DNA of 63,123 nucleotides, counting the filler, from Reticulomyxa filosa (Eukaryota > Protista > Foraminifera), in assembly GCA_000512085.1 (NCBI GenBank). It is 19 parts of 19 records of this genome, joined end to end, with 100 filler letters (N's around TTAATTAATTAA, not from the genome) between each part and the next. Parts side by side here need not be neighbours in the genome. Positions count along the whole stretch, not along the records: positions 1 to 1,559 come from ASPP01028198.1; 18 more parts are not named here. One strand, given 5' to 3'. The translations under genes were made by a program, and so were the position numbers. The first letter of the stretch is position 1. The number at the start of each line of letters is the position of its first letter. This document shows, one piece after another, positions 1 through 1,559 of this stretch. The notes beneath the pieces are model-generated. The model saw only the letters and a program-made list of their open reading frames with translations. It ran no database searches and was not told the origin of the DNA.

Positions 1-123
1 AAAAAAAAAAAAAAGACAAGACATAGTACCATGTTTTGAAAACATGTATGTATTGTATATATGTGTATGTTTGTGTATGTTATGTAATGAGCAGTGTTAA
101 TGTAAATTATAGGTATAACAAAC

Positions 124-884
124 TCCAAGCATTTCAGGAGGCGCAGTCCATCGTGTCTCTTTGGTATCGATGTGGTAATAATAGTCTTTGCCAGTGTTGG
201 GATCTTTGGCCTTTCTCCATTTGGAACCCGTCGAACTCGAGCTCGAGGCGAGATTGATTCCGCTTTTTCCGGGATTGTTGTTGTTGTTCTTGTTGTTGTT
301 GTTGTTGTTGCTGCTGTTGCTGTTGCTGTTGAAGTTGGTGCTACTGCTACTGCTGCTACTGTTGTTATTGGCATTATTGCCACGGGCCGGCGGAGCGGCT
401 TTTCCTTTGTTCCCCGGTTTGTTGGCAGCACTCAAACTTGTTGTGGAAGAAGAGGAGTTAAAATTTTGTTGGGATTGGTAAATGCTCGATTGGCTTGGAT
501 AAGCATTTCGGTCGTTTGCCCCTTCGTAAAAATTTGATTCACTTTGTCCGTACAATGTTGACTGTGATCCTTGATTCGGTTGGTATTGAATCTGAGGTTC
601 CAATGGCCTTTTTTTTTTTTTTTTTTTTAATAAAGAGTTTTTTTTAGTCAAAGTTATCCTTTTTCCGAATTATTCAAAGTATACGTTCACCAAAAAAAAA
701 AAAGTTGGTCATTCTTTTACTATCACGGGAGAGGATAAAGAGGGAGGGGAGGGAAAAAATACAGTCGTAATACAAACCCAGCGTATCCTGGTGGTGGCTC
801 CCATTGCGTTTGGCCAGTTGCCATGTTGGCATAGTATGTCCGGCCGGAATTAGGGTCCTGTACTGCGACCCAATTGTTGCTCAT
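124..884 (-). CDS. Protein with two WW domains (probably 3' partial); exons 884-778 and 607-~124
   Basis: Exon 1 MSNNWVAVQDPNSGRTYYANMATGQTQWEPP (WW). Intron 777-608 (GTTTGT...A20-G) keeps frame. Exon 2 ends KWRKAKDPNTGKDYYYHIDTKETRWTAPP (WW) after an N/S-rich linker. Confidence 0.85.
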
Positions 885-1559
885 TTCTCTCCTTTTTTTT
901 GTCAGACAAAAATGCTTTTAAGATTACTCGTTTTTTTCTTCTTTTCGTGGCCATGTTTGAGTTTAAAAAAAAATGAAAAGAGGAGTTAACTGTTGAATTC
1001 AAATGCACCAATTAAACACAAAATTTTTAATTATTATCTGTACTTCACAATTAAAACAGCTTTTAATTGATCTTTACTTCAAAATTAAAACGAGAGCCTT
1101 TTACCCGACACAAGCCAGGCACTTTTTAAATTTTGTTTTTATGATCCGAGGTTGTAAAAAAGATAATGGAAATTTTTAACATTTAACTTTAGAACAAGCG
1201 AAAGCGTTATTTTATTTTTTCCAATCCAAAAAGAGCTGAAATTTTTTATTTCACAAATGTTTATTTGTCAAGTAAGTTTATTCACGATTTTGCACTCTTC
1301 TTATCGTTTTTTTAAATTGTTTTGCCAATAGATTAAAAATTTGCGCAGATCACAAAATAAAAAACAAAGGACATAAAAAGATGTTGACCTTTAATAAACA
1401 ACCCCGACTCCTACAAAAACGTGGCTTATACAGAAATAAGAGGACATATCAAGAATTGATGTTTGTCTTTGAACAATTTCACCGTCAAACCATTGATTAC
1501 GCAATGATTTGTTTTAAAAAAGCATTGTTTTTTTTTTTTAATGTCAAAAAAAAAAAAAA

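Follow-up and report, generated by a model that had tools for sequence, protein, structure and literature searches.

The window is a 63,123-nt stretch of DNA from the giant freshwater amoeba Reticulomyxa filosa, a foraminifer, and the analysis covered its positions 1..1559. The first intron of a gene in this part ends in a run of 20 adenosines followed by G, the last A and the G forming the acceptor AG. This intron (608..777, minus strand) belongs to a known kind, the tract-free 3' splice sites of AT-rich protists, of which it is an extreme example, and offers a transcript-backed acceptor with no pyrimidine for 20 nt before the AG. The 3' end of this U2-type intron is probably defined by a branch point and by the choice of the first AG downstream of it, the A-run being an AG-free spacer grown by replication slippage and an adjacent pyrimidine tract being needed barely or not at all. 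Intron 1 would then show how few elements a 3' splice site requires if branch point and first-AG selection suffice. The A-run looks like a tolerated spacer of slippage origin in a lineage that does without the tract, and is not a proven new signal.

Gene structure and the acceptor at 608

The source contig, ASPP01028198.1 (1559 bp), has homopolymer runs at both ends and belongs to a fragmented assembly (GCA_000512085.1; 50,809 scaffolds, N50 of 3.6 kb, and mean intron length of 87 bp; PMC13746701). The gene lies on the minus strand, as do all features below unless stated otherwise, and comprises two exons with one WW domain each (Pfam). Exon 1 (778..884) starts with the ATG at 884 and carries the first WW domain (E=1.9e-13). 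Contigs of relatives cover 783-900, and the orthologues begin with M-S-x-W at the same place. Exon 2 (124..607) encodes a Q/S/N-rich linker and the second WW domain (E=7.7e-07), and relatives' contigs cover 124-268 and 371-597. The 5' part of intron 2 (1..123), with the donor GTTTGT at 123, is truncated at a T14 run, where the contig stops. At this donor, loose ends of relatives' contigs from runs X1 and X2 depart from the match at 124 and run on in open frame; the NCBI gene range also stops at 124, and in contig L004 the corresponding place carries an intron too.

Among proteins, exon 2 matched best its own NCBI model, ETO05384.1, named 'RGS domain-containing protein, partial [Reticulomyxa filosa]', and no other match came from word searches that used exon 2 or the second WW domain as query. 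The RGS domain of that name had no Pfam support. Most of the proteins returned by a large protein search were generic multi-WW proteins; three were homologues from foraminifers, namely Bolivina, Nonionella, and MMETSP0190, the last of which is Rosalina (PMC6783311). Scans of viral and prokaryote contigs gave no match. A full-length orthologue of 818 residues was located on contig L010 of the metagenome collection (54-2510), with WW, WW, MyTH4, and FERM domains. The exons in the window encode the start of a foraminiferal protein with the order WW-WW-acidic-MyTH4-FERM. The foraminiferal WW module was also fused to varied partners in L004, L005, L006, L008, and P0103: Cys-rich zinc-finger-like stretches (L004, L005) and a Rac-like GTPase (L006), both read by eye, and the start of a VIT domain (P0103, weak Pfam match). 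The many different partners suggest frequent domain shuffling of the module.

Spliced evidence was obtained from contigs of close relatives, which are about 91-94% identical to the window in the exons and are not the sequenced strain; the RNA nature of their runs is an automatic guess, and both junction-spanning runs come from one study. The public run search returned no RNA run of the window strain, the best runs sharing at most 8% of words. Runs of two organisms (X1-X3) carry transcripts of close Reticulomyxa relatives, 89-94% identical and representing several alleles or strains, and these samples possibly contain unrecognized freshwater foraminifers.

The relatives' contigs match both exons and skip intron 1. 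Window positions 783 and 597 correspond to letters 120 and 136 in record 4 of X1, and to letters 115 and 131 in record 9 of X3, which leaves 15 letters between them in either record. The junction lies in a repeat-masked stretch, so its letters were counted, not read. Among all in-frame GT/GC-AG pairs, 15 letters are expected only from 777/608, which joins both WW exons in frame. Its two in-frame competitors were rejected: 777/659, used in the NCBI model, predicts 66 letters between the exon anchors, and the donor at 773 with the acceptor at 592 (CCTCAG) predicts 3. Aligned with the NCBI protein, the full-length orthologue has a gap of exactly 17 residues, which are those added by acceptor 659. 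The foraminiferal orthologues align ungapped over the 777/608 junction, and the marine metagenome contig L003 has an intron of the same position and phase (phase 2). The A20-G end that a sequence-only reading had assigned to this 170-nt GT-AG intron was thus borne out by the sequence, the 15-letter spacing, and the orthologue gap. That reading had also considered that transcripts might use a different AG with an ordinary tract, and the relatives' transcripts fit 608 only.

The NCBI model appears to be wrong in two places: its start at 824 cuts into the first WW domain, and 51 nt of the intron (608-658) are rendered as 17 residues, six of them lysines. Its acceptor is an upstream AG (A5-G, 659..660) left unused in the relatives' transcripts. 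It is very unlikely that R. filosa splices to 659 as annotated, with the A-run coding for poly-Lys. The site is open and in frame, the model is public, and the spliced evidence is from relatives and not from the same strain; however, the 51 nt are missing from the relatives' transcripts and the 17 residues from the orthologues, the segment has about 87% A+T as opposed to 40-50% GC in the exons, and the frame hangs on the length of a homopolymer that is difficult to sequence. ETO05384.1 is probably wrong at the intron 1 acceptor, where it takes the upstream AG and reads the A-run as poly-Lys. Poly-Lys or poly-Phe runs seem to be frequent in R. filosa protein models, and elsewhere too they may be artefacts of this sort. 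Gene finders can overlook A-run acceptors and render the intronic A-runs as poly-Lys, the error made at intron 1, and R. filosa protein models and the splice matrices derived from them therefore need RNA-based re-annotation.

Anatomy of intron 1

The donor of intron 1 (772..777) is GTTTGT, a hexamer identical to that of the intron 2 donor. Both window donors thus have T at +3, and GT at positions +5/+6 looks steadier than +3; other foraminiferal donors were GTATGT, GTGTGT, GTTAA., GTACAA, and GTAACA. Close to the donor lies a U/C tract of 33 nt (727..759, 32 pyrimidines), and the TAG that comes after it at 722-720 is not used. A T12 run is located at 692..703, and the A12-G that it forms on the antisense strand (692..704) is a chance look-alike of an acceptor. 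In a motif scan, the sole CTRA motif within the intron was the branch-point-like TGACTAA (644..650), with the putative branch A at 644 (-37). A pyrimidine patch of 9 nt, CTCTTTATT (629..637), separates the A20 run from a preceding A8 run. The A20 run closes on the acceptor (608..628; A at 628..609, G at 608), its last A (609) being the A of the acceptor AG. This is the first AG downstream of TGACTAA, with none between.

Positions -22..-3 contain 5% pyrimidine, with A at -3; a polypyrimidine tract directly before the AG, that is, the metazoan type of tract with YAG, is absent in intron 1. With GT/AG ends, excision from the relatives' transcripts, and a donor that is not GTATCCT, the intron is of the major (U2-type) class. 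Minor spliceosome parts were not found in Rhizaria (PMC11347168).

The A20 run is far above the first-order Markov expectation (0.002 per piece). The contig is rich in long A/T runs, with 8 runs of at least 8 in 1559 nt (5.1 per kb); the density at the other loci is 0-2.0 per kb. The exact length of the A-run in the assembly may be an estimate. A retro-inserted poly(A) tail was rejected: the sole adjacent AATAAA is on the opposite strand, and no target duplication was seen by eye.

In the explanation preferred here, a tract-free U2-type intron with a passive A-run, U1 and a U/C-binding helper (TIA-1/Nam8-like) would commit the 5' end via the pyrimidine tract near the donor, and SF1/U2 would locate the branch motif at -37. 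U2AF65 would perhaps contact the 9-nt patch behind the motif, as the position of the patch makes weak ordinary U2AF65 binding possible. The first downstream AG would then be chosen and read by U2AF35, while the A-run would act as a passive, unstructured, AG-free spacer, grown by slippage like other non-coding A/T runs of the genome. The AG at 659, which is upstream of the CTRA motif, and the pyrimidine tract with the TAG at 720 are skipped. Weak or short tracts offset by branch signals occur in fungi and protists (PMC3033335), and in human introns an AG-free zone can separate the AG from the branch point and tract (PMC1431707). The literature search found no published U2AF data for Reticulomyxa and no discussion of the splice signals of this lineage.

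In fish introns, repeat pairing stands in for U2AF65. A similar hairpin in intron 1, formed by the U12 run and the A20 run and substituting for U2AF65, is extremely unlikely. The minimum-energy fold does pair both runs, but the frequency of this fold is 0.0001, the stem is missing from the centroid, and intron 1 folds worse than its shuffles (z=+2.06). No excess structure was found in the other foraminiferal introns either (z from -0.6 to +1.0). A structure-bridged intron, with paired repeats replacing U2AF2, was rejected on the z value and the centroid.

A-rich acceptors in the genome and in other foraminifers

The sequence-only reading had left room for A-run acceptors being rare genome-wide. 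Purine-rich, A-dominated acceptors proved common, 31,807 of the 60,647 in R. filosa (52.4%) as counted from the annotation and not from spliced reads (Nguyen and Xie 2019, PMC6339879, Table S3), under the criterion of five or more purines at -10..-3. A-rich acceptors are therefore not rare in this species, at least as annotated, and since the annotation errs by avoiding A20-G, long A-run acceptors are possibly under-counted. The only protist row above R. filosa in that source is Ichthyophthirius (54.3%); Entamoeba invadens (44.7%), Dictyostelium discoideum (34.2%), and Tetrahymena (32.9%) are also high. Shares are low in other rhizarians (Bigelowiella 11.6%, Plasmodiophora 10.6%), average 14% over the protists, and stay below 3% in mammals (PMC6339879). 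The paper covers G tracts in animals and plants, and its text makes no mention of R. filosa.

The A-tract might instead be a positive 3' splice-site signal, read by a U2AF65 with altered RRM specificity, by a paralogue of U2AF65, or by a poly(A)-binding protein recruited to this role. In the purine-rich subset, which makes up more than half of the annotated acceptors, the A share is 0.35 at -50, already 0.44 at -11, and 0.53-0.73 at -10..-4, while T falls (PMC6339879). G near the AG is 0.11-0.15 compared with a background of 0.16; this drop exceeds the prediction of independent sampling and counts against a purely passive A-run. Within intron 1, a conventional-looking pyrimidine tract with TAG is skipped, and changed U2AF specificity has precedents in the Fritillaria U2AF paralogues and Drosophila LS2 (mentioned in PMC6339879). 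Set against these points, the skipped TAG lies out of frame and lacks a preceding branch-like motif, the same-position intron of L003 has no A-run, one foraminiferal acceptor is U-rich, and random non-coding AGs show a similar profile. We regard such a signal as unlikely.

The control consisted of arbitrary AGs in the non-coding DNA of the contig, on both strands and with the true acceptor excluded (73 AGs in less than 1 kb). By the same criterion, 45 of them were purine-rich (62%, 95% CI 50-73%). In this small one-contig control, the share did not differ from the annotated 52.4% (p=0.13), and there was no excess at annotated acceptors. A rises toward arbitrary AGs likewise, because AGs often close A-runs. 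An annotated share close to the background indicates no selection for pyrimidines, and selection for A is not demonstrated. The absence of the 3' pyrimidine tract is general, by the annotated R. filosa share as well as by the nine acceptors of other probable foraminifers described below. Of the earlier claim that poly(A) replaces the polypyrimidine tract, the part that no tract adjoins the AG holds; the part that would make poly(A) a recognized element is not supported, given the background share and the lack of conservation of the runs. It is improbable that in Reticulomyxa, or perhaps in freshwater foraminifers as a whole, a base-inverted U2AF65 or a co-opted poly(A)-binding protein reads adenosines in place of pyrimidines at the 3' splice site. 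If an altered U2AF65 did read the A-tract, a core spliceosomal specificity would have been reversed in nature, a rare event.

Other foraminiferal introns were compared in a set of eight complete introns and one further acceptor from homologous contigs, with the borders set by protein continuity. The organisms behind these contigs were inferred from homology as probable foraminifers, and L011 is among unclassified Globobulimina-associated contigs. The nine acceptors, from distant marine relatives, had 45-70% pyrimidine at -22..-3 (average about 50%) and A-runs of 1-4 nt into the AG. The A20 run was kept neither in the same-position intron of L003, where the 3' end is an A/C mix, nor in the eight other foraminiferal acceptors. 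A clear CTRA motif at branch distance was missing from most of the other foraminiferal introns, a point against the preferred explanation. U/C-rich tracts were observed in the 5' half of introns in the window (727-759), L003 (628-706), L004 (1127-1202), and L006 (901-969).

These introns bear on the reading that foraminifers in general have a mild preference for A at the intron 3' end, with U avoided, A or A/C favored, and pyrimidines in the 5' half. Slippage would then have lengthened the runs in R. filosa, and the preference would be a polarity cue and not a specific tract. Over 9-10 introns, the 5' part was 64% pyrimidine and the 3' part 47% A, and polarity was strong in intron 1 of the window, L003, L004 intron B, and L006 intron B. 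However, the difference in A share between the 3' and 5' ends of the nine complete introns (0.47 vs 0.27) was not significant (p=0.07; range 0.07-0.10 at n=9), and polarity was absent or reversed in three introns. The reading is rather unlikely.

Comparison with known introns

Introns with a pyrimidine tract near the donor were reportedly described in fungi by Kupfer et al. in 2004, and intron 1 resembles fungal introns in this respect. The divergent U2AF paralogues of Fritillaria borealis (bioRxiv 10.1101/2025.08.15.670264) are a precedent for a lineage-specific shift in the 3'-site preference of U2AF. There, 95% of introns break GT-AG and the factors were assayed, whereas intron 1 of R. filosa has canonical ends.

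The introns with a distant branch point and an AG exclusion zone (Gooding et al. 2006, PMC1431707) share with intron 1 an AG-free stretch after a branch motif and pyrimidines, and the use of the first AG. In intron 1, by comparison, no alternative splicing was seen, the distance is only 37 nt, and the patch is only 9 nt. R. filosa, with A-dominated sites, is among the species in the purine-rich counts of Nguyen and Xie 2019 (PMC6339879, Tables S1 and S3). Fungi and protists have U2-type introns whose polypyrimidine tracts are short or weak (Iwata and Gotoh 2011, PMC3033335). Like these, intron 1 is a short GT-AG intron with a branch-like motif and no strong adjacent tract; it differs from them in that its spacer is pure A20 and that A occupies -3 in place of the usual C/T.
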